Part shown: positions 469-56,095 of the stretch, piece by piece | Position numbering within the stretch: position 1 is the stretch's first letter | Layout: every line of letters begins with the position of its first letter | Origin: Rhodosorus marinus CCMP1338 | Taxonomy: Eukaryota; Plantae; Rhodophyta | Direction: 5' to 3' | DNA length: 64,000 bases | Assembly (NCBI GenBank): GCA_029953675.1 | Contig: JAMWBK010000008.1 | Coordinates: 1,674,001 to 1,738,000 of the forward strand | Position numbers and translations under genes: made by a program | Notes under the pieces: model-generated | Told to the model about the DNA's origin: nothing | Seen by the model: the letters and a program-made list of their open reading frames with translations, nothing else | Database searches by the model: none

Positions 469-3400
469 ATGAAGGTTTCAACCGCAGTCTGCTTGGTGCT
501 TGTCGGACTATGCGGGTCCGCCCTGAGTGGACCTGTCGCTGCGCCGCTGAGCTCGAGACCTCAGAGCCCGCTATTACCATGCTCGGATTTTGCTGATAAT
601 TACGAGATTGTGAAGATCGGGGAGGATAACAACAGGTGCTACGATCTGCGCGTGGATGGAACCGGCGCCAAGGTCGGAACACTGTGTGTGAAAGTCAAGG
701 AGTTTCCCAACGGGAAAACTTGCATCCAGTTCTCATTTGCCGCCAAGCAAGGATGGGAATTCTACAAACTTGAGGCTGGCGCGGCGCAGGGATGCGCCCT
801 TAATCTGAGGACCGACCCCTTCCTGGTTTCTGCTGAGGGTTGGTTCACGTCGAAGAAACTCTACGTGTGTCTGAACAAGTTCCAGGCGTTCCCCGGACCA
901 AACGGAGATGGATGCTGCAACGGAACGCTTTGTCTCTACCCAGCCGTGAAGGCACGCAAGGGATCTAACTATGTCTACGTACTCCCCGAAATTGATGAGA
1001 ATGATTGCAAGCAAAAGAATGGTGACGAATTTGTTGGTTGCAGGGTTCCCTTGGTCTGCGAGACCCCAACACCCGAGCCGACTCCAACCCCCCCAATGGA
1101 ATTGCCATGCGAGGACTATGCGGATGAGTTTTCCAGTGTTGTGATTGGAAATGAAGAGAACAAGACATGCTTCCAGCTGCGCGCCAACGGAAATGCTAAT
1201 GGTGCCCGTGTCGGAACCTTGTGCCTGAGTGTGAGACCGGCTGGCGAGAAAACTTGCATCGTATTTTACTTCATCGCATTCGCCCCGTACATATTCAAGG
1301 ACGCGAAGGCAGGGTTAGCGCATGATTGTGCCGATGAAAACAAGTACCCCTTCAAGGTCGTGAAGACAGGTCCATTCAAGCTCGCGAAAATATACGTGTG
1401 CCTGAACAAGTTTAGCTCTCCGCCTGGAGTTGATAATGGAGGATGCTGCAATGAAGACATCTGTATGTTCTCGCAGGTAACTGCTCTAGACACGAGTTTG
1501 TATAATGCACAGAAGTTTAAGGCTTCTCCTAAGGACGGGGGGAAGGGTTGCGAAGAGACCGATAACGGTTTCGACACTCAATGTAATGTGCCGTTGATCT
1601 GCACTAACTCGACACCATCGCCGACACCATCGCCGACACCATCGCCGACGCCATCGCCGACGCCATCGCCGACGCCATCGCCGACGCCATCGCCGACGCC
1701 ATCGCCGACACCATCGCCGACGCCATCGCCGACGCCATCGCCGACACCATCACCGACGCCATCGCCGACGCCATCGCCGACGCCATCGCCGACGCCATCG
1801 CCGACACCATCGCCGACACCATCGCCGACGCCATCGCCGACACCATCGCCGACACCATCGCCAACGCCATCGCCAACGCCATCGCCGACACCATCGCCGA
1901 CACCATCGCCGACACCATCGCCGACACCATCGCCGACGCCATCGCCGACGCCATCGCCGACACCATCGCCGACGCCATCGCCAACGCCATCGCCGACGCC
2001 ATCGCCGACACCATCACCGACAGCACCACCAACCCCACCATGTGATGCGACCGATGTGGATTACTGCTTTTCGTTTGACTTCTCAAGCTCAATCTGGGAT
2101 CCGGTCAACGGTCTGAACGGAGGAGGAAGTACTGAGAAGTTAGAGTCGCAGAGGGAGCTGGTGTTGGGAGTCATGGACAGACTCGACACGCAGGACGTAA
2201 ATGGCCTTAACCGGTACGGATTTGTGATATTCGGAGGAAGTTCAGGAGGAAGTAACGAGAACAACGATACAATCGCAGATCTGTCCGAGAAGGTTGTGGA
2301 TCCTTTAACAGATTATGATACTGTTAAATCGGCGGTCGAGGCGTTGCAATCTCCTCCGTTGGTGCCTGAGAATCAGATCCCGGCCCAGAACACGAACATT
2401 GAGAAGGGTCTACGTTTCTGCGAGGAGATTCTGAACAGCAACGGCAATCAAAGAACGAGGGTTCTGATTCTGACGAGTGATGGAAGAGCGACGAGAGGCA
2501 ACGGTGCCGGTGATACCGACACTAACCCTGCTAATAATGACCTGGTTGCACAGGCGGTGGCAATCCAGAACAGTGGAATCATCATCGTAACTGCTGGGAC
2601 AACTGAAACGATTGACGCTCCATACTTGCCAGTATTTGATGCTCTGGCATCTTCTGGAGAAGCGATCGTGACGGAAAAACAAGAAGATTTCGATTTGTTA
2701 ATTGAGGATATTGTTGAGGCCATCTGCGGTGAACTGGAAACGCCGACACCATCGCCGACACCATCGCCGACACCATCGCCGACGCCATCGCCGACACCGT
2801 CACCGACACCGTCGCCGACACCGTCGCCGACACCGTCGCCGACACCGTCGCCGACGCCGTCACCGACACCGTCACCGACACCGTCACCGACGCCGTCACC
2901 GTCACCGACACCGTCACCGACACCGTCACCGACGCCGTCACCGACACCGTCACCGACGCCATCGCCGACGCCGTCACCGACGCCGTCACCGACGCCGTCA
3001 CCGACGCCGTCACCGACACCGTCACCGACACCGTCACCGACACCGTCACCGACACCGTCACCGACACCGTCACCGACACCATCGCCGACGCCATCGCCGA
3101 CACCGTCACCGACACCGTCACCGACACCATCGCCGACGGCACCACCAACCCCACCGTGTGATGCGACCGATGTGGATTACTGCTTTTCGTTTGACTTCTC
3201 AAGCTCAATCTGGGATCCGGTCAACGGTCTGAACGGAGGAGGAAGTACTGAGAAGTTAGAGTCGCAGAGGGAGCTGGTGTTGGGAGTCATGGACAGACTC
3301 GACACGCAGGACGTAAATGGCCTTAACCGGTACGGATTTGTGATATTCGGAGGAAGTTCAGGAGGAAGTAACGAGAACAACGATACAATCGCAGATCTGT

Positions 3401-5436
3401 CCGAGAAGGTTGTGGATCCTTTAACAGATTATGATACTGTTAAATCGGCGGTCGAGGCGTTGCAATCTCCTCCGTTGGTGCCTGAGAATCAGATCCCGGC
3501 CCAGAACACGAACATTGAGAAGGGTCTACGTTTCTGCGAGGAGATTCTGAACAGCAACGGCAATCAAAGAACGAGGGTTCTGATTCTGACGAGTGATGGA
3601 AGAGCGACGAGAGGCAACGGTGCCGGTGACACCGACACTAACCCTGCTAATAATGACCTGGTTGCACAGGCGGTGGCAATCCAGAACAGTGGAATCATCA
3701 TCGTAACTGCTGGGACAACTGAAACGATTGACGCTCCATACTTGCCAGTATTTGATGCTCTGGCATCTTCTGGAGAAGCGATCGTGACGGAAAAACAAGA
3801 AGATTTCGACTTGTTGGTTGAGGATATTGTTGAGGCCATCTGCGGTGAACTGGAAACGCCGACACCATCGCCGACACCATCGCCGACACCATCGCCGACA
3901 CCATCGCCGACACCATCGCCGACATCGTCACCGACACCGTCACCGACACCGTCGCCGACGGCACCGCCAACCCCACCGTGTGATGCGACCGATGTGGATT
4001 ACTGCTTTTCGTTTGACTTCTCAAGCTCAATCTGGGATCCGGTCAACGGTCTGAACGGAGGAGGAAGTACTGAGAAGTTAGAGTCGCAGAGGGAGCTGGT
4101 GTTGGGAGTCATGGACAGACTCGACACGCAGGACGTAAATGGCCTTAACCGGTACGGATTTGTGATATTCGGAGGAAGTTCAGGAGGAAGTAACGAGAAC
4201 AACGATACAATCGCAGATCTGTCCGAGAAGGTTGTGGATCCTTTAACAGATTATGATACTGTTAAATCGGCGGTCGAGGCGTTGCAATCTCCTCCGTTGG
4301 TGCCTGAGAATCAGATCCCGGCCCAGAACACGAACATTGAGAAGGGTCTACGTTTCTGCGAGGAGATTCTGAACAGCAACGGCAATCAAAGAACGAGGGT
4401 TCTGATTCTGACGAGTGATGGAAGAGCGACGAGAGGCAACGGTGCCGGTGACACCGACACTAACCCTGCTAATAATGACCTGGTCGCACAGGCGGTGGCA
4501 ATCCAGAACAGTGGAATCATCATCGTAACTGCTGGGACAACTGAAACGATTGACGCTCCATACTTGCCAGTATTTGATGCTCTGGCATCTTCTGGAGAAG
4601 CGATCGTGACGGAAAAACAAGAAGATTTCGACTTGTTGATTGAGGATATTGTTGAGGCCATCTGCGGTGAACTGGAAACGCCGACACCATCGCCGACGCC
4701 ATCGCCGACGGCACCACCAACCCCACCGTGTGATGCGACCGATGTGGATTACTGCTTTTCGTTTGACTTCTCAAGCTCAATCTGGGATCCAGTCAACGGT
4801 CTGAACGGAGGAGGAAGTACTGAGAAGTTAGAGTCGCAGAGGGAGCTGGTGTTGGGAGTCATGGACAGACTCGACACGCAGGACGTAAATGGCCTTAACC
4901 GGTACGGATTTGTGATATTCGGAGGAAGTTCAGGAGGAAGTAACGAGAACAACGATACAATCGCAGATCTGTCCGAGAAGGTTGTGGATCCTTTAACAGA
5001 TTATGATACTGTTAAATCGGCGGTCGAGGCGTTGCAATCTCCTCCGTTGGTGCCTGAGAATCAGATCCCGGCCCAGAACACGAACATTGAGAAGGGTCTA
5101 CGTTTCTGCGAGGAGATTCTGAACAGCAACGGCAATCAAAGAACGAGGGTTCTGATTCTGACGAGTGATGGAAGAGCGACGAGAGGCAACGGTGCCGGTG
5201 ACACCGACACTAACCCTGCTAATAATGACCTGGTTGCACAGGCGGTGGCAATCCAGAACAGTGGAATCATCATCGTAACTGCTGGGACAACTGAAACGAT
5301 TGACGCTCCATACTTGCCAGTATTTGATGCTCTGGCATCTTCTGGAGAAGCGATCGTGACGGAAAAACAAGAAGATTTCGACTTGTTGATTGAGGATATC
5401 GTCGAGGCCGTCTGCGGTGAACTGGAGGAACACTAA
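469..5436 (+). CDS. Secreted vWA-repeat adhesin/cell-wall protein: signal peptide, 2 Cys-rich domains, (SPTP)n linkers, 4 vWA domains
   Basis: Uninterrupted ORF (ATG 469; the ORF track starts at GTG 463). Hydrophobic N-terminus [20 protein letters not shown]. Each vWA has MIDAS DxSxS (FDFSSS), T (TNIEKGL) and D (LTSDG). Two 12-Cys domains precede the first linker. Confidence 0.92.
1609..2022 (+). repeat. 12-bp coding minisatellite CCGAC(A/G)CC(A/G)TC(G/A) encoding Ser-Pro-Thr-Pro; further arrays at ~2740-3138, ~3859-3960, ~4681-4710
   Basis: Read directly; roughly 34, 33, 8 and 2-3 units in the four linkers. Confidence 0.95.
2023..5433 (+). repeat. Four near-identical ~710-bp vWA-coding units
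   Basis: Units begin at CCACCAACCCCACC(A/G)TGTGATGCGACCGATGTG (~2027, ~3143, ~3965, ~4715). Only a few substitutions visible between copies. Confidence 0.95.
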
Positions 5437-5769
5437 ATACTAAAACTTTGAAGTAAAATAATTGGAAGTCATTGATTATTTACTAGATTGATAGCGTTGA
5501 ATTAAAATCCGTTATTCGGCTTCATGAGAATTGAAGATGCTCCAAGTAGCACAAACCAACAATTCACTTCGTAAAGTTCCAACGATGATAGATAAACACC
5601 TTGTAGAGCTAAGGGCGCCTTGCAACCGGCCGTATGTAGGCTTCGAAGCGTGAGCAACATTCTGCACATGAGAACCTAGTGTTTCAAGTTTGGCCATCTG
5701 ACTTCTCTGGGGTCGCAATGACCAGAGGAACAAGGCGATGAGTTTTTAGAGCCTAAGCACAAATGCCCA

Positions 5770-6610
5770 CCTACGTATTTCAACTCGTTGCGACGTCTCC
5801 TACTGGCAACGGACCCCCCCCCGTGTTGGAACTGGAAGTTCTTACAGAACTGTAGAGACCCGTGGAGGCGCATACACTGTTACCGTTTACTCGATCTAAG
5901 TCCATTGACTTAGATCGTTTGTCGAGTAATACGGTTGCTTCTCCTTCATTCGATTGAGGAAAACGTTCACATCTATCCAGCGCGAAAAAAACCCATGTTT
6001 TTTTCATACTATTTTCTGGTGATCTCGTCTTCGTCCCATTGATCGTCCTGTTGACTATGTTGCTATTTCTTCCATGGTTCCGTCTCCTTTCCAACATTAA
6101 AGCAGCGTTCAGACGCCACAGCAAGAAACTTAAACGGGTAAACAACGAGGACAGACGGTCAGGACGTTCACGGACCAATTCCCGAAGCCAACGAGAACCA
6201 ACGGAATCCATAAACCCAAAGCTCTCAATCACCAGAGGTACCAGGCGATGAGCTAGAGCCGAAGCACGAATGCCTGCTGAAGACAAGGCACCTGCATATT
6301 TCAACTCTTTGCGACGTCTCATACTGGCAGCGGCAAATCCACGGCGCTCTCCCGCAGCCAGCAAATAGCGACTAGCCTGAGGGTCAGGAACGGCAAGATT
6401 AACGTACGTCGTATGGCGGCTAAGCACGACTACCTGCTGAAGACAAGGCACCTGCACATTTCAACTCTTTGCGACGTCTCATACTGGCAGCGGCAAATCC
6501 ACGGCGCTCTCCCGCAGCCAGCAAATAGCGACTAGCCTGAGGGTCAGGAACGGCAAGATCAACGTACGTCGTATGGCGGCTATCGTCACAGGTGACCACG
6601 AGGTAATTTG
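5770..6610 (-). mobile_element. CRE-like family A RLE fragments, tandemly stacked
   Basis: TYVDLAVPDP..RRKELKY..HRLVPLVIESFG..LSFLLWRLNAALMLE. Segment 6285-6420 is duplicated at 6435-6590. Confidence 0.82.
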
Positions 6611-7254: not shown

Positions 7255-8658
7255 AAGGCGCCTTTAGCTCTAAGGTGTGTAACTCTCATCGAAGAATAGT
7301 TGTGGGTTTTTGCCTCGCTACTAGGAGCATCTTCAATTCTCATGAAGCCAATTTACTGATTTTAATTCATTGGCTATCAATCCAGTAAGCAATAAATCAC
7401 TTCCAATTATTGTACTTCGAGATTTAGGTTTAGTTTCTAGTTCACTGCAGGCGATACCCTCAATCACCAATTCGAAATCTTCGCATTTTTCCGTCCCGCA
7501 TTCTCTTATGGTATCGGCGTCGGCGTCGGTGTTTCCAAACCATCGCAGAGGTCCTCGATGATTTCCTCAATCAGCAATTCGAAGTCTTCTTGTTTTTCGG
7601 TCACAATCGTTTTTCCATTCGATGACAGGGCATCGAACACTGACAAGTATGCATCGTCAATCGTTTCAGTTGTCGCCGCTGTTACGATGATGATTCCACT
7701 CTCCTGAATTGCTAAAGCCTGTGCCACAAGCGCATTATCATTCGGACTGGTGCTGGTATTGTTGCGACCTTTGCCTCTGGTCGCCCGCCCATCGCTCGTC
7801 AGAATCAGGACCTTGGATCTTGTGTTATTGTTCTCGTTGAGAATTTCCTCGCAGAACCGCAGACCCTTCTCAATATTCGTGTTCTGCACCACGATGTCGT
7901 TCTCAGGTACTAACGCTGGAGACTGCAATGTTAAGACCGCCTCAACAACGACATTTGAACTCGTCAACGGATCAACAACCTTCGTTGACAAATCCGGGCG
8001 TGTATCGTTAAGCTCACTGGTTCCTCCCGAACTTCCTCCGAATATCACAAACCCGTACCGGTTGAGGCCCTGGACGTCCTGTACGGCGAGTCTCTCTATG
8101 ACCCCTACCACCAGCTCCTTCTGCGAATCAAACTTCTCCGTGCTTCCTCCACCGTTCAAACCGTTGATCGGGTCCCAGATCGAGCTTGAATAATCGAACG
8201 AAAAACAGTAATCCACGTCCCTTGCGTCGCACGGTGGGGTTGGCGGCAAAGTCGGCGTCGACGTTGGCGTCGATGTTGGCGTCGACGTTGGCGTCGATGT
8301 TGGCGTCGATGTTGGCGTCGATGTTGGCGTCGATGTTGCCGTCGATGTTGCCGTCGGTGTTGCCGTCGGGTTCGTGCAGATTAAGGGCACATTGCATTTA
8401 GTTTTTATTTCCTTCGACAAAACAAAATAAATTCCTTCGGCACGTGCTCAGGATTGCCTGTCATCCCCCTAAAACAACATCGGTTCCGCTCCATGAAAGG
8501 AGAAAGGTAAAGAAAAAAGCGAGAATTCGGAGAGGTCCCGATCTTCAACGGCACACTCCATTCACTTCCAGCAACCCACCCTCCCAGCCCCTACCACCAC
8601 CGCATCTATCCCCAGCCCCCCCTCCCCTGTCAGCTGTCAGGCCAAAATCTTGTTTAGT
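7255..8658 (-). pseudogene. Inverted, doubly deleted paralog of the vWA adhesin
   Basis: ORF 7506-8420 encodes CNVPLIC, a TPTS linker and one vWA (FDYSSS). 8430-8658 is reverse-complement homologous to the upstream region 1-195. 7255-7490 is homologous to the last vWA tail and 3' flank 5360-5623. No ATG or signal peptide. Confidence 0.8.
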
Positions 8659-9084
8659 GCTTGTTTTTGAGGGTCTTTCTCGTCCATTTCTGGAACCCTC
8701 TCAACAATTAATATTCGATGACAACTCCAAACACATTTTCTCATTGGACGAAAGAATCTAAATCTTACATTTAAACTAGACCCAAGGAGAACTCTCAACC
8801 CCATCCCCTGCTTCTGCGGACAAACTTCCCGCAACTCCAAAGATAAATCATCTCTTTTTCTTCTCTGAAGCAATTCAGAGAAGGTTTTGGTTTTGGGACG
8901 GCTTCCAAGCTGGAGACGTTGACGATAGGTCGGCAGTGGTAGGGATGATGGCTACATCCACAGCACCCCTCCATGCCCACCGCACCGGATTCTTACCCAT
9001 TGGAGTTAGCCGGGCTTAAGCGCATGTTGACCAGATCGAAAATCCGAGGGGGAGGTAGCTTCCATACGAGGCCGATGCAAGTGG

Positions 9085-9575
9085 TGGTTTTACTGTTTTT
9101 TATTAGCATAGCCTAATGCGCTATGCAAGGCGCGAAAAGGAACTAAGAACTAGGTAGGGAAGCGTGCAAACCCAGGTGCCGATGGCGCGCCTCGGCAAGC
9201 ATGCTGCTAGAATATCGCCACAGAGAGACACTTTAACGGCGTAAGAGTTCCAAGTATTCGGTAGGATGTCAGCGAAACATTTCCGCAACCACTCCAAACC
9301 CGACTTCTCCACGTGACCAAAGCTTTCCACAATGAAAGGCTGGAACCGGTGCCAGCGACCCTCTGCGCAAGGCAGACTGGCCATACTCTCAGCATACCGT
9401 CGTTCCTTCACTCGACGAAGGGCCGATGCGACTGCCTCCCGGCGGCGTGCGGGCAGTGGTTTTACTAGGATAGCCTGATGCGCTACGCAAGATGTAGGAG
9501 GCTTGGGGGAAAACAGGGTCCGAAGATGGGTAGTAGTTCCAGTATTTTGGAGTTTCTTAGTCCGGGGCATGTTGT
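9085..9575 (-). mobile_element. CRE-like family B tandem 3' fragments
   Basis: HRFQPFIVESFGHVEKSGLEWLRKCF; two termini GCTAT(G/C)CTA..AGTAAAACCAC. Confidence 0.8.
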
Positions 9576-13443: not shown

Positions 13444-15741
13444 CTATGAGGATCGGCTCCCAAGCAACGCGAAGATGGGCTCGGGCGCAGTTTTGTAAAG
13501 TAAGGAGCCGAGCGGCTCTTTGAATCCGAATCGGTATAAGAGCCTTGGAATCGAGAGTAGGTACTCAGCGATGAGGGGATGCACTGACTGCGTGTATGTG
13601 GAAGCAACGACGTTGTTCACGACAATTGTTCCCTGCAGGGTGTGTGGATTGTACAGGCCAGACTTTTTCACGCGTGAGATCCGGACCACCCTCGACGAGC
13701 CGCCGTTTGCGAGCTCCATCTGATCCCCCTTGGCGACATCCTTCGCCGCTCTCAGCTCGTCACCCGTAACGAGATAGTGCGTCGGAGACAGTTCGATGAC
13801 GTGCCCGTCACTTGATTCGATGCGAATAAACTCCGAAACCACAACAGGATCCCGGTGGGAGAACGCGTAGACATCGCTGAAGGAACCATCCACAACCAGG
13901 ACTCTGTCTCCAGCCTCCAGCTCCCGCATCTCCTTGATCGTTCCGTCCGCCAGGTTCACCTTGGCATCCGCTGGGAAGCAAGCGTTCACCAGACCGGGAG
14001 CTCCTGGCTGAGGTGACTGCGGCGGCTCTGTCCCTTTAACGCACTTGTTCGAAACCTTTTGCTGGAGTTCGTCCTCTGGTTGAAGACCGTAGAGACTACA
14101 TTCAGCTTCAACCTCCCTGATGCAGTCCAGAACTGCCGAAACCAGAGTACAGCAATCGGCGGTAGGTTCATCCTCATCCATGCAGTTGAAATCTTGCTCC
14201 AGATCGCACTCATTTAACTTCAGCGCACACTTCTGGAGCTCATCGAGAGTCTGGGTGGGCGTGCTACTGGCGTCCGGATCTGTAGTCGGGGTAGGAGTTT
14301 CGATCACACTCTGAGTAGGGGTAGCGCTCTGATCAAGCGTCTGCGTAGGAGTGTTGAGTTCACTCGGAACCGCATCAGTAGGTGCCAAGCTTGAAGTAGG
14401 CAATGCGGTACCTGAGCTGGTCGGTGTTGCCGATGGAAGTTCACTGCTCGTTACTGTAGGCATTTCACTTGCTGTTGGCTCCTCGGAGCCAGTTACGGGC
14501 GGAGTAGGAGGAGCCGGTGATTCGCTAGGAGTGCCCTGCTCTGAGGGAGCCGCAGTGGGAGTCGGTACCATCGTTGTTGGCGGGCAGCTTGGCAGGACGC
14601 TCGGCGTAGAAGCTGGTGTTTCGGTGGCTTCCGCCGTGTCGGGGTCGCCAACAATCAGCTCAGCTCCGATGACCGCGACGGTGTTTCTTATGAAAGACGA
14701 GTGGGTTTCGGAGTAGATGCTCATGTAAACTTGTTCATAGGCTGGGTCACAATCTAAAAACCCACGAAAAGCGGAGCAGATACCGAGAAGGTTTTGTTAA
14801 GAAAAGTCGCTATCCAGCCCTGCTTTGCAATCCGTTCGTTCCCTCTTACCTTGAGCGCCGTAGCCATAGCTCGCGACTCCGATGAGGTAGCTATCCTCGA
14901 CACTGCCACCTCTAACCATGAGTGGACCGCCGCTATCACCGTGACAGATCGTCGCTCCGGAGTTATTAAAGTTTGGATAGGAACATATCAGATCCTCGTC
15001 GCCGTTGAAGCCATTGAGCTCGAGGAAATTGCAGTTCTCGGTGGTGACCACCACGCTCGGGGCGTAGTTCAAGGTGCCGTCCAGGTGAGGCTGGTTTGTT
15101 TCATATCTTCCGAATCCAATGGCGATGGAGTCGATTCCACTGGGCGGCTTTGAAAAGCTGATTTTCAGTGGAGGAATGTTGGGGAGCTCTTCCGCAAGCG
15201 CGAGGATCCCCACATCGTGGCCCTCGAAGGCCTGACCCTCAACGTACCCGTCTGGAATGTAGATGTCGGAAACCTCTGAACAGGTGCCCATGTTCTTGCG
15301 AAGGTTGCTCGTCCCACCGCAGGCATGCAGCTTGACGGAGCTGGGAATGCTGTAGACGCAGTGGGCGGCAGTGAGGACGACCCGTGGCGCAATCAGCGAG
15401 GCGCTGCAGAATATATACAGCGCTCCATCCTCATGCTCAGCAATGAGAGCCAAAACGTTGGGGAACTCATCATCATCACGAACCTCCTCCCCATTAAACA
15501 AAAACGTGCTCAGATCCGGCTGCTCAGAGGCCTGTCTCGACAGATTTTCCACCCGGAAGCTAGCGCCCCCGCCCGTGAACAGGCCCAAATGCCGAATGCC
15601 CAAGCCATTCAAGCTCTCAAACGACTGGACGCCAGAAAATTCCACCGGAACCCCCAGAGAAACATCAAAAAGCAGACTAAACACCGACAAAACACCGCAA
15701 AACAAGCTCAAAAACGTCATAGTATGTCCCTTCCTCCCCAT
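13444..15741 (-). CDS. Secreted trypsin-like serine protease fused to Pro/Thr/Ser stalk, 8-Cys domain and Hedgehog-type Hint domain; exons 15741-14850 and 14753-13444
   Basis: Intron 14849-14754 (CAAG/GTAAGA...TTTTTAG/AT, 96 nt) joins the two ORFs in frame as YGYGAQ-DCDPAYEQVYMSIY. Triad motifs LTAAHC, HDVGIL, GDSGGP. Hint motifs A/CFPADA, ELSPTH, YNPHTLQGTIVVNNVVAS. ATG at 15741 or 15720. Confidence 0.9.
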
Positions 15742-18179
15742 ACTACTCTCTCCACTCAAAGCTTTCCGCACACCTGCTAAACAGCGCCCTCATCTATTCG
15801 AAGATACATACATACTTTACAACACATCTATATACATACAGGATCACTAAAAAGTCCCCACACCTACCTCGCTGACTCCCCATCCCAGCCGTCAGGACCA
15901 ACCTGCCCATCCTTAAAACCAACGGCGGAACTCAAGTCCCGCTAACCATTGCCAATCCGGCCAACATCACCAACGAGGCTGTACAGGAACAAAACTATTT
16001 AATCGTCACTAGCTTTTTAAAAATAATTCACAAACCTCTATCAATCAAAATATATCCCATTTTCGTCCATAATCCAGTTATCAATCAATAAAATATCGTA
16101 TTAAATATTATAACTAAACTCATATCTAGATGACTCTTATCAAGTAGTATTCTGACTCAAACAAATCCTCAATTCAGAACAGACATCGTGCCACTAAGCG
16201 AAATTTACTGGACCCCCTTGTTGTATTACCATAAAATATATTTCATAAACTAAAGTTTCATTATTATGGATAGATTCGACAGAAGGTGAATCAGGATAGG
16301 GGGGTGAGTATTGCGATGGATATATCGTAATCGGCAGTAATCTGTATTGATTTTCAGGATTTGTAATTTTGCTGACACTCATTCATGACAAAAAAGTGTG
16401 TATTTTATTTTGAATTTTCAGGTTGGTTTGCTAGGGTTGGATTTTGGGATTGTTCGGTAGGTTTGGGTTTAGGATGATGCGCAGGTGGTGTTTGTGGTTT
16501 TACTATTGTTTCGGCGGGTAGGGTAGGTGAGTTGAGAGAGTGTGGCGGTTTAGGGACTTGGGTGTGAGTCTTGATGGACTTGAAGATGGATTTTGAACAG
16601 GTCATGTGGACATTAGTGTGTATATATCGTATACGTTGAAGTAGCAGTTTAGTATAGAGGAGTTTACACTTGGAGTACAACCTCCTGAGGTTTTTGTTTG
16701 TAGTTGTTGTGTATGTTTTTGGAGAGGGGAAAGGAATGTGGGCTAACCCGGCTGACCAACGCACCGAGATTGGCAATGGTGAAACGTGTGTGTGAGCAGT
16801 CTGTTATTGGAGGGAAGGGATGTTGTGCTGGAATGCCGGCCCTGGATTGAACGTGGTTTTGGGGTGTGTTGGGGAGGGGGCAGGGGGAGGGAGAGACACG
16901 GAGTGTTTTTGCGTTTTTTTCTTCTTTGGCAGTGGTTCTGGTTTGGTCCTGGTTTGGCTATGACTAGCTCCCCGGGGGGAGCAACAAGCAGGCTAAGCGG
17001 GAAGTTTTTCAGTTTGGGATTGCCTGCATCGGATGCGCGCGGTTAGCAGAATCGAGCTGTATCCTGTTGGAGTGTGGGGCGGGCTGATTGGGAGAGTGGA
17101 ATTGCGTATGATGCAAAGGCGCGAGCAAAAGTCTGAACATGAGAATCTGGGGTTTCAAGCTATCATTTTGACCTGACTTCTCTTGGGTCGCGTGGGGAAG
17201 CAGGGAGGTTGGATGGGAAGGACAGGATTGGGATTTGGTATTTGTTTACTTCGTTTCACTGCAGAGCACGCAGCGCGGACGGGTGATCTGTGAATAGAAT
17301 TGTCCCAGGGGAAAACCAGGGGAAGAATGACTTGGTACAAGGTGTATTGGATGGAGAGGGTTAGTTCTCGATGACATGTGGGAAGCTGTTATCCTGATAG
17401 ACTCCTCTCATGGCTGAGCACTGGTCAGGAAGATAAGCCCAAGCTTCCATTTTTGGGTGTTCGAAGAAATACGAAGCTGGAAAACCATAGTTCCCTCTAT
17501 TATCGAACATATTCGCCTTGCGTTTTGATCCTTTTTCAAACAAGATAGCGCATGCAGGCCAAAAAAAATGGCATTCCCGGTATTTAAGCTTTTTGGGTGT
17601 CATCCGAAGCAAGCCATTCGAGGAGCATGTTTACATAGCGACTACCAGATACAGGGGAGCCTGTGCGGGAAGGTGAAACAAGACAACACAAACTGTAACA
17701 ATCCATATCCGGGAATTTCACAACGTGTCCGGGAGAGTAAACTCTCCAACCCCGGGTTTTCCACACACTTTCTTGCAGAATTCGGATAGCAAAGTAACCT
17801 TCGACAATTACATCTGTGAAAATTTTGACGAAGCAACTGGAATTCGCTCTTCCCTTGATTGAAAAGTTCCCATCCGTGGCAAATTTTCGCCTCCGTTAAC
17901 GGCTCAACGCTTGGTCCGTTCCCTCCCGACATTCCCACATCCAAAAAGTTCTATTTTTATGAAATCGATCGTAGGTTAGATACGATTAGATTATGGTCGA
18001 ACCATCGGATACCGGAAAACGGAAAAAACGATATCAATTTCAAGGTTTTTTTGCGGTAGTTAACGGAAGTTAACGATAATTAACGGTAATATAGGTAATT
18101 GTCAGTAAATTATGCGATTTGGGCCAGTCTACCCTGAAGGCGTACTCATTTTGTGCGGGTGGTTAACCTGTGAATCGAT

Positions 18180-31513: not shown

Positions 31514-32629
31514 TCTTCCCTTCCTAAAGAAGAATCCGCCGCAACTCAAAAACCCCAGAAAATTGTTCAATCAAGAATCAAGCAGAGAAGTCTCATCTCC
31601 CTACCAACCCACGATCGCTCCACACCCTTCCCTCCCCATCCAATCTCACACGACCCGCAAACGCACATAATACCGGACCTGTCTCACACGCACTCTCTCC
31701 CTTTTCAACCCCCGCTTCCTACTCCCTCACATCCAGACCTGTTTATATCTCTCCAGCAAACCGCTCCATCGCAACCATCTGGTTCCTGTTTCTATTGTTT
31801 TCTTGTTTTCTTTCCGAACCCAACATGATTGCCCACTAATTTTATTTTTTTTTGGTTTCACAAGGCTGGAACCTCCCTGGTTAGGGAAACCTCTTCATCC
31901 TCAAACCACGCTCTTGAACATCAAGAAAACCAAAACCTACTATGTCCGCACCCCCCCCTCCCGGACTCCCAAACGTTTGGATGAATTCCCTTGCAAACAC
32001 ACTAAAAACAATCAAATCGAAAAAGGACACATGGTGAAGGCAGAGGCGCTGATTGTGTCCGGAGTAGACGTAGCACTTTTGTTGTCGGTAAATTCAGAAG
32101 CACTAAATGTTTGTTTGTTTTTTCTCGCTTCTTGTTCAGTGAAACCTACATTCCTACTAGAGTTTTGGAAATAATTTGTGGAAACGAAATTCATAATCCT
32201 TTTTTTACTTCTTTGGTGTACAAAAAGTTTCATAATTTCATATTCGGTACATTCCCGCGTTTCGTCCGCTGGAGCTGAACCTGTTTCTTGTTTGTTTTTC
32301 ATAGAAATTGTCCGATGTATTTTCACCCCTCAAAAGTATTTGGAAGCAAAACCCCGAAAAGAAATTGAGGCTCCACGTTCATGTTTGCACACCTTTTTTA
32401 TCTCGCCAGCATGCGTTTTCGGTTTTCCTGTGAAACTAACAAACCCGGATGGGTGTCCTGCGTTTTGGGTTGCATTCTCTTGGCATATTTGGTAGTGCTT
32501 TTTCGGGGGGCGGGTTTGGAATTGGTGTGAGGTTTAGAAGATGGGAATCAAAAGAGCTCTGTGACACTGCTACGTCAAGTAGCTGAGGTTAAAGCGGACG
32601 ATAGTTCCACACACTACTACTATGGGGGG

Positions 32630-46520: not shown

Positions 46521-47924
46521 ATGAAGAAGACTATGCTCAAGCTTAACGTTCTGCTCCTGGCAGGAACGCTTTCAATGATCTGCGCATTCACGGCCGAAAG
46601 CCTGCCTAGCCAGAGTCGGACTTCGGAACCAAGTGGGAAGAGCACTTGCCTGAGGGAAATTCTTCCGACTCAGTTCGTAAATTTCTTCCAGCGGGAGTGT
46701 TTCAGTCTGGTAAGCAGATCGGACAAGGTCAAGTATGCTCAGGTGTGCACAGGGACTCGTGTGAGACTCACACCGGATGCGGGGGAACCAAGTGTAAGGC
46801 TTAAGTTTAAGGCTAGAGGTGAAGGCGTTCGATTCAGGAAGGTTGCCGTCGGCGTCTACCAAAATTGCCACATAGTCCCAAACTCTTATGCTAAGTATTA
46901 CGTTAGAAAGCACATGAATAGCGAAGTGACAGTAATAGACATCCCCATAGACGATATCCCGGCGAGGAGCAACTGTTGTGACAGAAAGCTGTGCATGGTC
47001 GTTACGGCGGAAGTCTACGTAGAGCCGTCCGAACGAAAAGTCCAGCTTCGGGCGGGAGAAGAATGCTCATCCTACCCGTGGGGAGTTGGCAATGGTCGGG
47101 CATGTCGGTTCGGGATCAACTGTATCAACCGCATCGTCGGAACGCTAAACGATGATATTCTCTACGGGACCGACTATGTTGACTGGATATACGGCTACCT
47201 GGGAAATGACCTAATCAATGGGTATGGCGGCGACGATGTGATCCACGCGGATTATGGAGACGACGTCGTTCACGCCGGCAAAGGTAACGACAGAGTATAC
47301 CTTAGTGGTGGCACCGATTTTGCGCTCGGCGGCAAGGGAAACGATCTCATATTTGGCGGAGAGGGAGACGATTACATTCATGGACAGCGTGGGAACGACC
47401 GCGTCTACGCAGGTGAAGGGGACGACTTCATCCGCGGTGGTTTGGGAAAGAACGTTTTGGAGGGAGAGGAAGGTGGCGACGTTGTCGTCGGAGGCGTGTC
47501 TGCGGATGTTATCGTTGGCGGAGCAGGAGCAGATAGGCTCTACGGTGCCGCTGGGGGTGATATTATCTTGGGTGAGCTGGGCTCGGACTTGATTTACGGA
47601 GGCGCTGGAGCGGATGAAATACTCGGAGGGGAAGGTAATGACGAAATTTACGGCGGCCCGGGCAGCGATACCATTAGTGGTGGACCCGGGAACGATTCTC
47701 TTTTCGGTGGCGAAGGAGATGACGTCATCTTCGACAAAAAGGGTAACAGCTCCGTTTACGCATCGTACGGGGACGATACCATTACCACCGGGGATGGGAA
47801 CGACGACATCGACGCGGGACAAGGAGACGATGTGATTAATAGTGGACACGGGCTCGATAATGTCGATCCAGGACCAGGCAGAAATATTGTCAACGGAGAA
47901 GAAGTTGACATCCCTCCTTTCTGA
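46521..47924 (+). CDS. Secreted protein: signal peptide, Cys-rich domain, 28 contiguous RTX-type (GGxGxDxxx) nonapeptides
   Basis: Intronless 467-aa ORF; nonapeptides run in register from GTLNDDILY to PGPGRNIVN. Confidence 0.9.
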   Translation: MKKTMLKLNVLLLAGTLSMICAFTAESLPSQSRTSEPSGKSTCLREILPTQFVNFFQRECFSLVSRSDKVKYAQVCTGTRVRLTPDAGEPSVRLKFKARGEGVRFRKVAVGVYQNCHIVPNSYAKYYVRKHMNSEVTVIDIPIDDIPARSNCCDRKLCMVVTAEVYVEPSERKVQLRAGEECSSYPWGVGNGRACRFGINCINRIVGTLNDDILYGTDYVDWIYGYLGNDLINGYGGDDVIHADYGDDVVHAGKGNDRVYLSGGTDFALGGKGNDLIFGGEGDDYIHGQRGNDRVYAGEGDDFIRGGLGKNVLEGEEGGDVVVGGVSADVIVGGAGADRLYGAAGGDIILGELGSDLIYGGAGADEILGGEGNDEIYGGPGSDTISGGPGNDSLFGGEGDDVIFDKKGNSSVYASYGDDTITTGDGNDDIDAGQGDDVINSGHGLDNVDPGPGRNIVNGEEVDIPPF

Positions 47925-47972: not shown

Positions 47973-50900
47973 TAGGGTTGTCATCTCTGTCCGATAAAAA
48001 AACGTCCGATTGCGTCCGATAAATACCGGACGGTCTAATAAAAGTGTATCGGACCTGTATTACGTAACAATAGACATATATGCTGTTTACCCCCCATCCG
48101 ATACGAGTTTATCGGACCTGAATATAGAAGACAAAATGGGTTTCGTCCAAGAAATGGTCCGATAACGACCGGTTGCGTCCGATATTTTTCAATGCATCTT
48201 TTTCTGTGCATAGTGTCGTTCGCTGTGGGCTTTGGGACTTTTGCTTGGCTAACCACCCGCAAAAAAGCAACAGGCTATTGAGAACATATTGGGAAGTCCG
48301 AGTAGCCGTCGCGGAAGGAACAGGGCAAGGGGTAGAAAGAGGAGATAAGGCGGTGGCCAACTATCTTGGTATAGGGTGTGAGAATTCTGGGCGCATCTAT
48401 TGACTAGCAGGACTATGTTCTTAATAAAGCATGCCTCAAGCCTCATGTAAGAATGCTCACAGTGGAGGAACCCTAGATTTTGATCTCACAAACAACCGCT
48501 CCGTAACGCATAACATTCAATAGCTGCGATCTTATGTGTACTTGTTGCTTCTCGCATATACAGGACTTCGGAGGGGTCATCCAGACTCTGAGATTGATGT
48601 CACAAACATCGGCATTGCGGGGCACAAGAACTCTCCGACCTTATTCTTAGGTACACATGTCTTGAAGCAACTCATGGTTACCAAAATACTGAAGCTACTG
48701 GTCACGTGGCTCGAACAGCCAGTCCAGTCGGCTTGCTCCGAGAGCAAGTCCCCCGCGGGCTAGGGAATACGAACAGCACAAAGAGCTCGTCTCGAGAATA
48801 AGGACGGTTGAACTCCGCCACTGGGTCAACTCAAGAAGACACTGCAACGCGACCAACCATATACTCCATCCCCAAAGTACTCACGTACAAGAGGACACGA
48901 GAAAACTCCCTTCGGAATGCGCTTGTTCTACTCCAAGTCCTTGCCCCTTAACCGCAATCTTAAACCAATGCTTGCCAGCCTGTCGAGTCTAGAAGTAATC
49001 TGTGAGAACCTCCCCTGACAGCTGTGTAATCTGTCAATGTTTTAGAGTCGGGCACCTATTTTAGTGCAGGATGTCAATGTTTTAGTATCCACTGGTTTCT
49101 ACTTTACTGTCAGGTATGTTTTAGTTTACAGTAACCAAGACTATATAAGGCCTAGCTTTGCTAGAACTTGAGACCTAGAATTGAGTAAAGACAAGTTAGT
49201 TCAAAGAGTCCTAACAAAATGGTCTCATCGCCGGAGAAACGATCAAAAGGAAAGCAGAAGGCGACGGAGGAGGACCACGAGAAAGATGTCCGAATGGTAC
49301 TACGACAACTAGAGCAGAATCAACTAGTTGTCAAACATTCGAAGCGCCAGTGCGGAGTACGCCAAGTATGCTACGTAGGTCAAATCTTGGCGGGAGGCAC
49401 TCGTCTCCCTGATCCTAAGAAGGAGCAGGCAATCCAGAATTGGAAGGCTCCCACAAACGTAAAAATAGTACGTGCGTTCATGGGCTTCGCAAATTTTCTA
49501 CGGCGGTTTGTTCCTCGCTTTGCACAGGTGGCTGCACCACTGCACGCACTCACCAACAAGGATCAGCAGTGGAAGTGGCACCGGGAGGAGCAACACGCCT
49601 TCAACGAAGTAAAACGGGCCATATCGACCCGACGCTCCCTTTCATTGTTCAAGTGGATGCAAGTGACGCGGGTGTCGGCTGTGTTCTCTTTCAAACGCGG
49701 CAAGACCAGGAGGTGCCAGTGGCCTATATGTCGCGCTCTTTCAACGCAACGGAAATGCGCTACAGTACCTACGAGAAAGAACTGTATGCCATCGTACTGG
49801 CAGTACAACAATGGTCCGTATACCTCGACGGGCAGCAGTTCAAGGTGCGTACGGATCATAACCCCTTGCGCTTTCTGCAGACACAGAAGACGTTGACGCG
49901 ACGACAAGCGCGTTATGTCAACGTACTATTACCCTATTCCTTTACGATCGAGTATGTACGGGGCAGTCTCAATATCGCGGACGCCCTCAGCCGCGACGCA
50001 CTACGGGCTATCCGCGTCACATCAGATGCAGATTGGACTCAAGACTACGAAGCCGACGCAGAGTTCTCTACTCAATTCCGCGGCCCGGTGGGCAGCTTGA
50101 AGGTTTTTAAGGGAAGGGGGGGCTGCTGTTCTTACATGCAAGGCTTTATGTACCCGGCAACCGCGTCACCGAGGTCATTGGTACGCACCATAAATCAGTG
50201 ACGGCTGGTCATTTCGGGGCACGGGCAACGTATCGACTATTACGCCGACGATACTACTGGCCAAGCATGCGCCAGGATGTGCTCGCTCGGGTACGACAGA
50301 GCGAGGTATGTGCCCGAGAACAACCGTTGAGACGCCACCAGGGAGAGCTTCAACCGCTCCCAATCCCAGAGAACCGAGCCGTGGACTGGACCATGGATTT
50401 CATCACGGGTTCCCTCGGTGAACGGTTATGATGCAATAATGTTTGTAGTCGACCATCTCACGAAGTTTGCCGTTTTCGTCCCGACTTCGAAAACGGTGAC
50501 GGCAGAAGAGGGGGCAGATCTTGTTGGCCCACAAATCATCTCCTTGTTCGCGTTATCCCGGAGCTTCGTCACAGATCGTGATAAGGTCTTCACAGCGACT
50601 TTCTGGCGACACCTTCTGCGATTGATGGGGGTTCAGCAGCTGCTCTCTACCCCGTACCACCCCGAAACGGATGGAAAGACGGAACGGGTGAAATCAGACC
50701 CTACAAATTATGCTGAGATGCTGTTGTACCAGTCCAACATGGATGCAGTGTCTACCCCTACTTCAGCTGGCCTACAACAACCATGCGTCGGCCAGTACGG
50801 GATATACACCGTATTTTCTGTTAACCGGAGGGCATCCACGTTTGAACTTGGACGCTCTCAACTCAACCCCGGCGATTACCAGCCTTGCCGACGCGGCGAC

Positions 50901-52015
50901 TGCTTTCGTGAAACGACAACAACAAATTCTTGCAGACGCACGCAAGTCCATGGCCCTGGAGCAGGAGTTATAAACTGATCACGCGAATTCACGGCGTCAC
51001 ACCAGGGTGTTCAACATTGGTGACAAGGTTTATTTGTCCACGCGCAACCTCCCTCTGGAAGGCCGTACCCGGTTTCAATCTCGCTGGTTGGGCCCCTTTC
51101 CAGTCATCGAAAAACATTCGGACGTCGCGTACACGCTACAGTTACCTGATGAAATGCGGGTACACCCGACATTCCATGTTTCCTTACTGAAGAGCGCACC
51201 GCCTGGGACAACTGAAACCCGACATATTCCTGTGCGAACCAATCTACACCCGACGCAACCCGTGCTATCGGTATTGAGCGTGCGTACGGATGATGAAGGC
51301 ACACGCCAGTTTCTATGCTACCGCGAACATGAATCGTGGACTGATGCTATTTGGCTCCCTGAACGCGACTATCCTACGGACACTCTATCACGACAACGCC
51401 TACGACACTACCTGAACTACCGAAAAATGCTCGATGCTCTTCCTGCAACGATTTGAGTTTGTGCCCAAACTCGGCGGGAGGAAGGTGAGAACCTCCCCCT
51501 GACAGCTGTGTAATCTGCCAATGTTTTAGAGTCAGGCACCTATTTTAGTGTAGGACGTCAATGTTTTAGTATCCACTGGTTTCTACTTTACTGTTAGGTA
51601 TGTTTTAGTTTACAGTACCCAAGACTATATAAGGCCTAGCTTTGCTAGATCTTGAGACCTAGAATTGAGTAAAGGCAAGTTGGTTCAAAGAGTTCTAACA
51701 TAATGATGATTCATTACATCACAGTGTCAGCGAATCAGACGAAGAAGTAATGATGAATCATGATATGCGAACTGTATCAAGAAGTAATCATGATTCAATA
51801 TCTGAACTGAAGATGATTGATTGCTAGATTAACGTTGATTGAATACAGGACGATTTATCGGTCATGTTTATGAGAAGGGCAGCGGACCCGTTTTTTCGAA
51901 GAATTGCAATCAGACGCCCCTTCGTTTTATACTGTTTTGCAATTGTCTATCTATCCACTTCGAAAGATATCGGTACCGTCCAATAAACGTTGTCGGACGG
52001 CGCATGACAACACTA
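47973..52015 (+). mobile_element. Non-autonomous hAT-like DNA transposon copy H1 (hosts Gypsy 49001-51700)
   Basis: TIRs TAGGGTTGTCAT (47973) and ATGACAACACTA (52004-52015); subterminal TCCGAT/ATCGGA repeats; internal homology to H2 and H3. No clean 8-bp TSD seen. Confidence 0.75.
49001..51700 (+). mobile_element. Deleted Ty3/Gypsy (chromodomain) LTR retrotransposon, LTR family 1
   Basis: LTRs 49001-49216 and 51484-51700 (about a dozen differences). TSD TAATC/TAATG, PBS TGGTCTCATCGC at 49220, PPT GGCGGGAGGAAG. Frameshifted RT C-terminus, RNase H (DASD, YEKEL, TDH), integrase (GHFG..YYWP, GPF) and chromodomain-like tail; gag/PR absent. Confidence 0.93.
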
Positions 52016-52019
52016 CTAT

Positions 52020-52640
52020 ACTATGCCACCTGCTCGCCGGCTGCCCCGCTGTGAAAGGCGCCCGAGCCCGACGACATACGCGATCTTGAACCTGTTATAC
52101 CGCGAACTTCGACCTATCGTACGTCAAGCCGGTCTTGAAATTGAACGTGAGAAGCCCCGGGCTGTTGCAGGCTACCAGAATGATGAACACCGCGTGGCTG
52201 CCGTGTGGTCACCTGTGGCGATAGCCTCCGTACTACGTATGTTGATCTTGCTGTTCCTAGTCCTCAGGCTGGTCGCTATTTGCCGGCTGCGGGAGAGCGC
52301 CGTGGATTTGCTGCTGCCAATATGAGACGTCTCAACGAGTTGAAATATGCGGTAGCACTGTCTTCCCCATGCGTTCGTGCTTCGGCTCTAGCTCATCGCC
52401 TGGTACCTCTGGTCATTGAGTGCTTTGGGTTTATAGATTCCGTTGGTTCTCGTTGGCTTCGGAATTGTTCCGCGAACGCCCTGACCGTCTGTCCTCGTTG
52501 TTTACCCGTTTTAAGTTTCTTGCTATGGCGTGTGAACGCTGCTTTGATTTATGAGGCCACAATCTTCGCCGCACTTAGTCGTTTTTTTCCCCCCGAGGTT
52601 TCTTCTCTCAGGCCCGGATTAAACCAATTCATTCATTTTA
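52020..52640 (+). mobile_element. CRE-like family A CCHC-RLE-3' end
   Basis: HLLAGC..TTYVDLAVP..HRLVPLVIECFG; terminus GGATTAAACCAATTCATTCATTT. Confidence 0.82.
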
Positions 52641-53544
52641 CTGTTCTAGATTGTCCAAGTGCTCGGCGATAGCATTGCCTCTTTTGGAACGAATCATACT
52701 GCTTGTTGGCGATCTGCTGGAAACGTAGTGTTTTTTCGGTTTTTGCGAAGTGCTATCGTAGATCACCTTATTCATCACGAGGGAGGGGTGGATTAGGCAA
52801 TGACCTCGCCGCATATCTGTTCGAAACAATATTTGAAGTAGCTGAAAACCTTTAAAAAATCAAGAACCAATAAACGGTCTCGTCGTGGAGTCCCGTACTT
52901 CAAATTCGTTTTGATCAATGCATCAAACAGGAATTCGGTTCCCCTACAATAGCATCCTTAGAACATGCCTCTGCATACTTGTCACTCGCAGGATCACCAC
53001 CCAGACTGCTGCACTTTTGGAGCGCAAGGTACGCACCCAAAGGATTTCGGGAGGGCACACGTCCGAACAGACAACTCTGGCGAAGTACTGCCCGCCTGGC
53101 AACAAACGCATAACACGCGGACATGGAGGGTGGGGAGGATTGCCCCCCGCGCTCGAGAGCAGTGTGTTATCTCAATATGGGGCATCCTTAGCCAATATTA
53201 AGTCGCGCTTCTTTCGCTTGCTTGAGACTGCATACGGTACCAGTCAGTCAAGTACAAGAGACCGGTCTGCAAGAACCCTGACGAGCATCCAAAGCCGATC
53301 CCTTTATTGGTCAAACAAAACCAAAAAAATCTTATGTTAATTGGTTTGTATATTTCTGTTAACTAATTAAAATGTGCTTAGTGTCCTTCCTCACCTATTC
53401 TGAAGCGACTGATTTGCTAGGAAATTACAGTTCATATCCGAAAAGAACGACTCGAATACTCCATTTTGAGAAGATCACGAACTGTTGATTAGTAAATCAT
53501 GTTAGTACCAAATGTTTACTATCAGGCATAGAGTTCAGAGCTTA

Positions 53545-54500: not shown

Positions 54501-55354
54501 CACCAACCGGTATAAAGCCTCTCGACGGCAGTTCATGCCTACGCGGGCTTCGCCAAGTGTGTGAAACTGAGTACGTTCGGTAGTGACCTTGAGCAGGGAA
54601 AGGTATCGTAATTGGCTTGTACTCAACTGTTCCACTATTGCGAGCTAAACTGGTTTCTCCTAGTCTCGGGAACGCGCATTTCCCTTCCCACTCTCGCTAC
54701 GGTTCGTTAAGTAGAAACTGATGCTCACAAAAAATCTAAGGATTATTCTAAGCTTCTTGGACTACACAGCTCACTTTCGTCGTTCATTATTGAAGCATTC
54801 CGATCTCCGATGGTGGTTGGACCGGGATGCTGTCAAGACTCATCCACGTCGGCCACCACTCATGTAGTAAGATTTGTTGTGCTGCAAGGTTTTCACCCAC
54901 GCCCGTCTGGTTGGTTCCGCTACTTCCGTTCCTACGTGTCTGAGCAAACTCCTGTATTGGGGATTGTCTTCCTCAGTATCTAATCATCATCATAATCGTC
55001 GCACTGAGCTCCCCCCGCAGCATTCACCCTTGTCCAGGCACCAGTACTTGATACAAGCTTGCGGCGTGAGTTGTCGAGGGGAAATTTTATTGGAAGGGCA
55101 CTCTGTCTCCTTTGGGATTTGTGGGATTCTCTTTTGCTACCGTTTTGTTGTAGTGATGTTCTCGTTCAGTTGAACGTGAGTCTCTAGAAGAGATGTCACA
55201 TTCAAGGCCTTCGTCCTTGGGTAGGGTCGTCCGTCTTAAGGGTCATGCTTGAGAGCAGTTGAGATGCATCGTCGGGGATGAAGAAGCTGATTGTGATCAT
55301 TCTTTCACGGGATTCAAGTAGACTTGTTCGGCTTATTGTTTCTTGCAAGAGCTG

Positions 55355-56095
55355 ATGGACTCGAAGCTGCTTGTCCCAGGGCTGCTGGTCTTCTTCGCTT
55401 TGGTTTACGGGCAAATTTCCTCTGATGGTTCAGGAGAAACTTGTATGGACTTTCTGCAAGGCGTCAAGCTTGGGACTGTTGAACATCGAGCGCTGTGTTC
55501 TGAAAGGTATTGTAGATATTTAATGGATGAAAAGGGTGTTGAAAGGGTCACTATGTGCGTGGGAAATCGAGTGATTGGGTACGGCAGGAGATGTGTGCAG
55601 ATTCGATTCGAACCAACGTTCCTGACCGATCCGTTGATTCGAGTCCGCGCTGGGATACATCCGAGTTGCGATTTGATTCCCGATGAGAGCGAGGGAAAGT
55701 TCCAGAAGGAAAGATCCACGGAGCAGCAGATGAGGAATATCCACAAACTGTTCCTATGCTTTGATGAAATCCCATCGAAGGAGGATTGTTGCGAGACCAA
55801 TCGATGCCTCATTGTGGAAGCCGATATCCATGACGTCGAGAGTGACGCTGAGGTCACTTCTACTCTATCCGACAAGCGATGCGGGGAGAAGAACAAGGGT
55901 TGGTGCCCTTTACGAATCGGTTGTGTGGATCCTACCCTGCAAACAACAGCCACAGCGACGGAACCGGTAGAACAGGCTCGGGACAGCACAGATTTGGAAC
56001 CAAAGCGTCAGGACGACGGCTTGGGGTTTATTGGGTACGTCGATTACGTTTATGAAAACGTCGATGGCGAGATGAAGAAGTTTAACATTTCTTGA
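55355..56095 (+). CDS. Small secreted protein with a single Cys-rich (CC) domain
   Basis: ATG 55355, signal peptide MDSKLLVPGLLVFFALVYG. Cys spacing matches the domains of the vWA and RTX proteins; short Thr-rich/acidic tail. Confidence 0.82.
   Translation: MDSKLLVPGLLVFFALVYGQISSDGSGETCMDFLQGVKLGTVEHRALCSERYCRYLMDEKGVERVTMCVGNRVIGYGRRCVQIRFEPTFLTDPLIRVRAGIHPSCDLIPDESEGKFQKERSTEQQMRNIHKLFLCFDEIPSKEDCCETNRCLIVEADIHDVESDAEVTSTLSDKRCGEKNKGWCPLRIGCVDPTLQTTATATEPVEQARDSTDLEPKRQDDGLGFIGYVDYVYENVDGEMKKFNIS

Follow-up and report, generated by a model that had tools for sequence, protein, structure and literature searches.

The protein part of red-algal cell coverings is little known, and most work has dealt with their sulfated polysaccharides. 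Diatom frustulins are calcium-binding wall glycoproteins with repeated acidic cysteine-rich domains and proline-rich spacers, and in Volvox and Chlamydomonas the chief matrix glycoproteins are the pherophorins. Pherophorins carry globular domains of about 170 amino acids (aa) at the N-terminus and about 155 aa at the C-terminus with a hydroxyproline-rich rod between them, and Volvox has 118 pherophorin genes (PMC9818292). Here we describe a cysteine-rich domain of about 165 aa in three genes of Rhodosorus marinus CCMP1338. This unicellular red alga belongs to the class Stylonematophyceae, and a nuclear assembly is available for it (PMC10250338). The genes lie in a stretch of 64,000 nucleotides (nt), called the window below (assembly GCA_029953675.1, contig JAMWBK010000008.1 of 2.12 Mb, positions 1,674,001-1,738,000), and encode an adhesin with vWA units, a protein with RTX repeats and a protein of 246 aa. 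No earlier description of the cysteine domain was found in the literature, and we conclude that it is a previously undescribed domain family whose members follow a well-known design, that of the modular matrix glycoproteins of algae.

Four copies of one cysteine-rich domain

An earlier note on this DNA had placed four copies of a single homologous domain in these three genes, directly after the signal peptide and in tandem in the adhesin. Translations, hydrophobic N-termini and profile envelopes agree with this arrangement, and the positions given for the copies hold within about 10 nt. In the list below the copy boundaries are hidden Markov model (HMM) envelopes, the E values come from a window-free profile built from 29 homologous domains, none of them taken from the window, and the signal-peptide-like N-termini were called from the translations of the open reading frames (ORFs) with a hydrophobic-region heuristic, a crude rule.

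469-5436, plus strand: adhesin ORF, 1655 aa, with a signal-like N-terminus, two tandem cysteine domains, a (TPSP)n linker and four vWA units with TPSP linkers between them
469-531, plus strand: signal-peptide-like N-terminus of the adhesin
568-1068, plus strand: copy 1, adhesin residues 34-200, 12 conserved cysteines, subfamily A, E 6e-40
1096-1611, plus strand: copy 2, in tandem after copy 1, adhesin residues 210-381, 12 conserved cysteines, subfamily A, E 1.8e-33
46521-47924, plus strand: RTX ORF, 467 aa, with a signal-like N-terminus, one cysteine domain and RTX repeats
46521-46595, plus strand: signal-peptide-like N-terminus of the RTX protein
46638-47132, plus strand: copy 3, RTX protein residues 40-204, 10 cysteines, subfamily B2, E 1.7e-27
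55355-56095, plus strand: ORF of the 246-aa protein, with a signal-like N-terminus, one cysteine domain and a 53-aa tail
55355-55414, plus strand: signal-peptide-like N-terminus of the 246-aa protein
55433-55933, plus strand: copy 4, residues 27-193 of the 246-aa protein, 12 conserved cysteines and one extra, subfamily B1, E 8e-31

When the window-free profile was run against the six-frame translation of the window, the four copies were recovered at these E values and the next best fragment reached 0.94. A search for further or degraded copies in the window found none except a vestige of 10 residues (8370-8399, minus strand). The divergent copies also find one another in pairwise BLASTP (E 5e-6, 2e-9 and 4e-4), copies 1 and 2 are 42% identical, and the alignment of all four has 13 invariant columns, 10 of which are cysteines. 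In all three proteins the hydrophobic N-terminus is followed by a domain start at residue 27-40. BLASTP, the window-free profile and the predicted fold described below thus agree in confirming a single homologous domain.

Cysteine pattern and predicted disulfides

An alignment of 33 domains (A2) defines the family as a module of 160-175 aa with 12 cysteine columns and the glycine of an 'AG' strand. Besides the 12 cysteines, it conserves this glycine, an aromatic-glutamine motif and the motifs VC[LF][DN]E[FI] and CC[NDE]xxxC, and its consensus reads C..C[YF].L ... VG.VC ... GK.C[IL].F ... AG....C ... [FY]Q ... VC[LF][DN]E[FI] ... CC[NDE]...C ... C ... C.....C. The family is recognised by a CC followed by a cysteine four residues on and by three C-terminal cysteines, and the four window copies align over the whole profile. 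The 12-cysteine scaffold that had been proposed for all four copies is complete in copies 1, 2 and 4 but not in the RTX copy, which has 10 cysteines and lacks numbers 4 and 6.

Within A2, cysteines are lost only pairwise: numbers 4 and 6 twice (in the window RTX copy and in the relative P0018), 5 and 9 four times, 2 and 3 once, and 1 and 7 once. Because the conserved cysteines vanish in pairs and never singly, the alignment implies six internal disulfides, with predicted bonds C1-C7, C2-C3, C4-C6 and C5-C9 and two more among C8, C10, C11 and C12. If the scaffold cysteines are paired internally in this way, they are therefore structural and not cross-linking, and the covalent cross-linking through scaffold cysteines that the earlier note had considered appears unlikely.

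These counts also bear on the possibility that the domain is mainly a unit for protein-protein oligomerisation or covalent cross-linking, which would build a network by intermolecular disulfides or head-to-head contacts and would not bind polysaccharide. Such a role would suit the tandem or repeated arrangements in the adhesin (copies 1 and 2) and in the relatives P0004 and P0005, the latter with the order domain-RTX-domain-RTX, as well as the odd number of 13 cysteines in the 246-aa protein, the thirteenth of which is kept in its orthologues. This extra cysteine is possibly free, and the 246-aa protein is the sole window protein with an odd number. However, the cysteine count is even in three of the four window copies and in most relatives, the paired losses speak for internal disulfides, and nothing points directly to oligomers, so that we regard an oligomerisation unit as unlikely.

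Predicted fold and structural neighbours

AlphaFold2 models were obtained for copy 1, from an alignment of the four copies only (predicted local distance difference test, pLDDT, 82; predicted template modelling score, pTM, 0.82), and for copy 4, from an alignment of 34 sequences (pLDDT 88.6, pTM 0.84). Each is all-beta and begins with one short helix at the N-terminus, after which come ten or eleven strands. Because the order of the strands is identical in the two models, the divergent copies 1 and 4 are predicted to adopt one beta-sandwich fold. The statements on the family and on its fold are the ones in which we place high confidence.

Extracellular beta-sandwich modules are often binding or spacer units of surface proteins, and generic ones, immunoglobulin-like or resembling carbohydrate-binding modules (DUF3823, adaptin-ear-like and glycoside hydrolase accessory modules), share with the Rhodosorus domain an all-beta sandwich of similar size. 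The similarity to them is too weak for a superfamily assignment (template modelling, TM, score 0.30-0.35, E>=0.02), and none of them has the six-disulfide scaffold. With both models, Foldseek searches of the PDB gave E >=0.02 and TM <=0.35 throughout (best 0.30-0.35), and sequence searches of the PDB with profiles of four and of 33 sequences gave 0 matches at E<=10. For the cysteine domain, Pfam likewise gave no match in the three proteins, in ten relatives or in the 33 domains at E up to 10, and the view that it has no Pfam family therefore holds for the Pfam copy used. Unalignable copies, differing folds or a match to a characterised Pfam family, the outcomes named beforehand as fatal to the idea of a new common domain, were not observed.

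Among the predicted viral structures of BFVD there is a sole structural neighbour, A0A481Z1W0 of Pithovirus LCPAC001 (Foldseek E 5.6e-4, probability 1.0, query-normalised TM 0.60 over 172 aligned columns, 12% identity). The likeness is a fold match of model to model only, and the viral protein differs in being an uncharacterised protein of 559 aa with so low an identity to the domain.

Taxonomic range of the family

To delimit the family, 1.84 billion representative proteins were searched exhaustively with HMMER and a profile of the four copies (E<=1e-3). This returned 42 matches, about 39 of them real; epiplakin and two RCC1 proteins were rejected as the three false positives. Word-indexed homologue searches returned three proteins for A1, 11 for A2 and three for A3, the last two being of little use, and the family as such came from the exhaustive search. 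Apart from a pair of proteins from Bangiopsis sp. CCMP1999, another stylonematophyte, all real matches with an organism name belong to R. marinus (the NCBI NDN08_ set/KAJ89..., UniRef and MMETSP strains). The matches suggest a family that is expanded in Rhodosorus, with at least about 35 clusters at 50% identity, and that is so far known only from Stylonematophyceae. Family members are dispersed over the R. marinus genome. Their locus tags hint at loose clusters, one of them spanning NDN08_005310 to 005358, and the contig of the window carries a further paralogue at a distance of about 290 kb.

The N-terminal position of the domain is a general feature. In 47 of 50 relatives that start with methionine the first domain begins by residue 60, and at least 41 of the 50 have a signal-like hydrophobic region, the visible exceptions being fragments or mis-started models. 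So strict a place beside the signal peptide, ahead of very different C-terminal parts, would be expected if the domain were an N-terminal pro-region or intramolecular chaperone that serves the folding or export of the C-terminal part and is then cleaved off, outside the mature matrix protein. This possibility is weakened because in many members (P0001, P0011, P0012, P0016, P0029 and P0034) the domain is followed by a short tail only, which leaves no partner to chaperone. Internal copies of the domain in P0005 and P0028 also speak against it, as no conserved processing site was seen after the last cysteine, and we consider a cleaved pro-region very improbable.

Architectures and subfamilies

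The partners found across the family are vWA units with a MIDAS-like (metal ion-dependent adhesion site) motif, RTX repeats and Pro/Ser/Thr rods, and internal domain copies occur in P0005, which repeats the order domain-RTX, and in P0028. The parts that accompany the domain in the three window proteins are as follows.

1612-2019, plus strand: first (TPSP)n linker of the adhesin, 136 aa, from the translation
2740-3135, plus strand: second linker of the adhesin, 132 aa, from the translation
2041-2739, 3157-3855, 3979-4677 and 4729-5427, plus strand: vWA units of the adhesin (four stretches that match Pfam VWA and VWA_2 with E about 1e-22)
47139-47870, plus strand: RTX calcium-binding nonapeptide repeats (Pfam HemolysinCabind, PF00353, E 4.7e-66, 218.6 bits, 13 stretches)
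56021-56092, plus strand: C-terminal peptide LGFIGYVDYVYENVDGEMKKFNIS of the 246-aa protein, 24 residues, nearly invariant in orthologues of two other strains, in which the linker before it is variable

In the adhesin the Pfam scores are above the gathering score (79 bits for VWA and 80 bits for VWA_2), all four vWA units carry a MIDAS-like DFSSS motif of the type DxSxS, and the linkers measure 136, 132, about 40 and 16 aa; the longest is probably an O-glycosylated rod. The vWA units are 97-99% identical at the DNA level, which suggests recent tandem duplication or concerted evolution. The RTX protein has 15 starts of GGxGxD-type motifs between residues 234 and 442, and the peptide LGFIGYVDYVYENVDGEMKKFNIS at the end of the 246-aa protein may be a sorting or docking peptide.

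The adhesin also has a truncated paralogue nearby.

7506-8420, minus strand: ORF of an inverted, 5'-truncated adhesin paralogue with a TPST linker and one vWA unit
8370-8399, minus strand: domain vestige at the start of this ORF, 10 residues that correspond to the last strand with the last two cysteines

Its vWA unit is 74% identical in amino acids to the adhesin units, and no domain sequence was found upstream of the vestige in any frame. Because repeat-like ORFs flank it, the ORF is probably what a rearrangement or a transposon insertion has left of a gene.

Clustering by identity separates deep subfamilies that follow architecture, with 16-21% identity between them. Subfamily A, with both adhesin copies and 30-40% mutual identity, carries Pro/Ser/Thr rods, tandem copies and vWA units (P0019, P0022); subfamily B2 (the RTX copy, P0005 and P0018) carries long RTX arrays; and subfamily B1 (the 246-aa protein, P0020, P0021 and others) has short degenerate RTX-like tails or none. 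Because identity between the subfamilies is so low and each has its own partner type, the three window genes represent three old lineages, a case of ancient diversification and not of recent shuffling. The proposal that the domain had been shuffled onto three architectures is therefore sound as to the architectures themselves, namely vWA, RTX and no partner, but the recent shuffling it implied does not agree with subfamilies that are so deep and so partner-specific.

Comparison with pherophorins

UniRef names three relatives (P0008, P0010 and P0052) as pherophorins, and it must be asked whether the domain is a very remote, possibly rearranged pherophorin relative, that is, the globular end of rod glycoproteins that self-assemble and are cross-linked into an insoluble matrix. 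The name stands in the UniProt records A0AAV8UNN6, A0AAV8UM57 and A0AAV8UUH2. The two groups resemble each other in part of their general plan. Pherophorins (PF12499/DUF3707) are secreted algal matrix glycoproteins in which a cysteine-rich globular domain of about 150-170 aa, similar in size to ours, follows the signal peptide and precedes a proline-rich rod, and they form a large lineage-specific family, as does the Rhodosorus domain. The adhesin and several relatives have this plan, with a signal peptide, one or two domains and a Pro/Ser/Thr rod, the distal part being vWA or absent; the RTX and stand-alone forms have no rod. The pherophorins differ in having an (SP)n or Pn rod and a second pherophorin domain where the Rhodosorus proteins have (TPSP)n and vWA or RTX, and in their host, which is a green and not a red alga.

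At the level of sequence, the comparison speaks against a relationship. The pherophorin sequences of Volvox and Chlamydomonas were taken from the supplement of PMC9818292. As a positive control, the Pfam model PF12499.13 found the Volvox pherophorins phV2, phV7 and phI with 126-205 bits (E 1e-36 to 1e-60), whereas the same model, with a gathering score of 24 bits, gave no match to the window proteins, to full-length P0008, P0010 and P0052 or to any of the 33 family domains, even at E<=10; the local version is.13 and the precomputed matches cite.14, so that a later model may behave otherwise. The precomputed Pfam entry '-' for P0008 and P0010 was not used as evidence, since the RTX gene has the same '-' despite its strong HemolysinCabind match. 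With hhalign, comparison to eight and then to 24 pherophorin domains, with a colinear or a doubled query, gave probabilities of 0.2-0.4%. Weak HMM matches in a consistent permuted register had seemed to favour a rearranged relative, but they did not survive controls: ten permutation cut points scored as reversed controls did (about 12.8 vs 12.4), and real against shuffled sequences gave a mean z of 0.74 against pherophorin. When the A2 and A3 consensus sequences are compared, the pherophorin signature FP[YF]xxC ... YCF.I.V ... CC..DL.KIEF.V ... CCP is not found in that order in A2, and the order of motifs (FPxC...YCF...CCxxDLxKIEF...CCP in pherophorins) and of cysteines differs between the two groups, which have no detectable sequence or profile similarity. 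Membership in the pherophorins is thus not supported by sequence, and we hold even a very remote relationship to be improbable.

Proposed role of the domain

Overall, these results are best explained, and we think probably correctly, by an undescribed six-disulfide beta-sandwich family of Stylonematophyceae that acts as the head of matrix proteins. We speculate that the domain serves cell-surface and sheath proteins as an N-terminal head for binding or assembly. It would attach to the sulfated polysaccharide sheath, or to other proteins of the matrix, by non-covalent contacts and would thereby present a variable C-terminal part, either a mucin-like TPSP rod with metal-dependent vWA units, or a calcium-binding RTX beta-roll, or a short tail. 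Calcium may be the functional link between these partners, through the MIDAS motif and the RTX repeats. The function as a binding head is put forward tentatively, as plausible rather than probable, and is graded separately from the family and the fold. The earlier note had suggested that the domain might serve targeting, cross-linking or ligand binding in matrix proteins, a reasonable interpretation once corrected as above.

Several points weigh against this explanation. The domain shows no ligand-binding signature, and the giant-virus protein closest to it in structure is itself uncharacterised. The restriction to Stylonematophyceae depends on a thin profile of four sequences, which may have missed other red algae, and the range was counted from matches with organism names, which several from Logan or JGI do not carry. 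Transcript evidence covers the 246-aa protein only through orthologues (82-84% identity) and the other two genes only through paralogues. Finally, the automatic UniRef label 'Pherophorin domain-containing protein' on three relatives hints at a connection, although it was not reproduced here.

As a described parallel for a matrix-protein head with calcium-binding partners, diatom frustulins are also algal wall proteins that combine cysteine-rich domains, calcium binding and proline-rich spacers. By their description they are set apart, as their cysteine-rich domains are much shorter and have an unrelated pattern.

Other features of the window

Public gene calls on JAMWBK010000008.1 include exact matches to the 246-aa protein and to the 467-aa RTX protein, and the 1655-aa adhesin product has no exact counterpart among these calls. 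Long ORFs are sparse in the window, retroelement remnants occur and no tRNAs were found, features that are consistent with a eukaryotic nuclear region. A bacterial origin of the window was ruled out by the sparse ORFs, the lack of tRNAs and the exact protein matches to the R. marinus nuclear contig.

Other genes of secreted type are abundant around the domain genes, including those for beta-helix proteins, a trypsin and a Hint-module protein with PT-rich linkers, and the remaining genes of the window are compatible with a secreted-protein neighbourhood. The features noted there are the following.

18891-21242, minus strand: secreted-looking protein of about 800 aa in which a PT-rich linker connects two halves that resemble right-handed beta-helices; weak Pfam matches to Beta_helix, NosD and pectate-lyase-like families
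29150-31570, minus strand: paralogue of the preceding gene, likewise of about 800 aa and of the same plan; no Pfam match
13444-14724, minus strand: protein whose N-terminal half is rich in PT/ST and whose C-terminal module is of the Hint (hedgehog/intein) type, E 2e-29
14797-15771, minus strand: trypsin-family serine protease, E 2e-24, adjoining the Hint-module gene
49219-51456, plus strand: overlapping frame-shifted ORFs between the RTX gene and the gene of the 246-aa protein, resembling reverse transcriptase, RNase H and integrase on the basis of their translations
5780-6457, minus strand; about 9000-9300, minus strand; 52205-52672, plus strand: three sites with related peptide stretches that include ASALAHRLVPLVIE

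The ORFs at 49219-51456 look like a decayed retroelement of the Ty3/gypsy type. The stretches at the three sites follow the pattern ...AAGERRGFAAA.MRR..ELKYA.ALSS...ASALAHRLVPLVIE.FGF.DSVGSRWLR... and are probably a dispersed repeat or transposable element.

Conclusions

In summary, this study defines an expanded set of secreted proteins in R. marinus, with a fold model, a predicted disulfide map and three architectures, namely mucin-like rod with vWA, RTX and stand-alone. The set offers a starting point for a parts list of the red-algal matrix, and for asking whether the matrix modules of red and green algae are related or independent. It is a candidate for a new Pfam family, and it corrects or at least questions the automatic 'pherophorin' label; on a long-standing general question it has no bearing. 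There is a small chance, in our estimate, that the domain is an ancient diverged counterpart of the pherophorins, or else a new beta-sandwich fold confined to red algae and giant viruses. If the former were true, the toolkit of a cysteine-rich head and a proline-rich rod would be older than the split between red and green algae; if the fold were common only to giant viruses, as in Pithovirus LCPAC001, exchange between algae and viruses would be indicated. Were either of these true, R. marinus would provide an entry point to the evolution of algal extracellular matrices.

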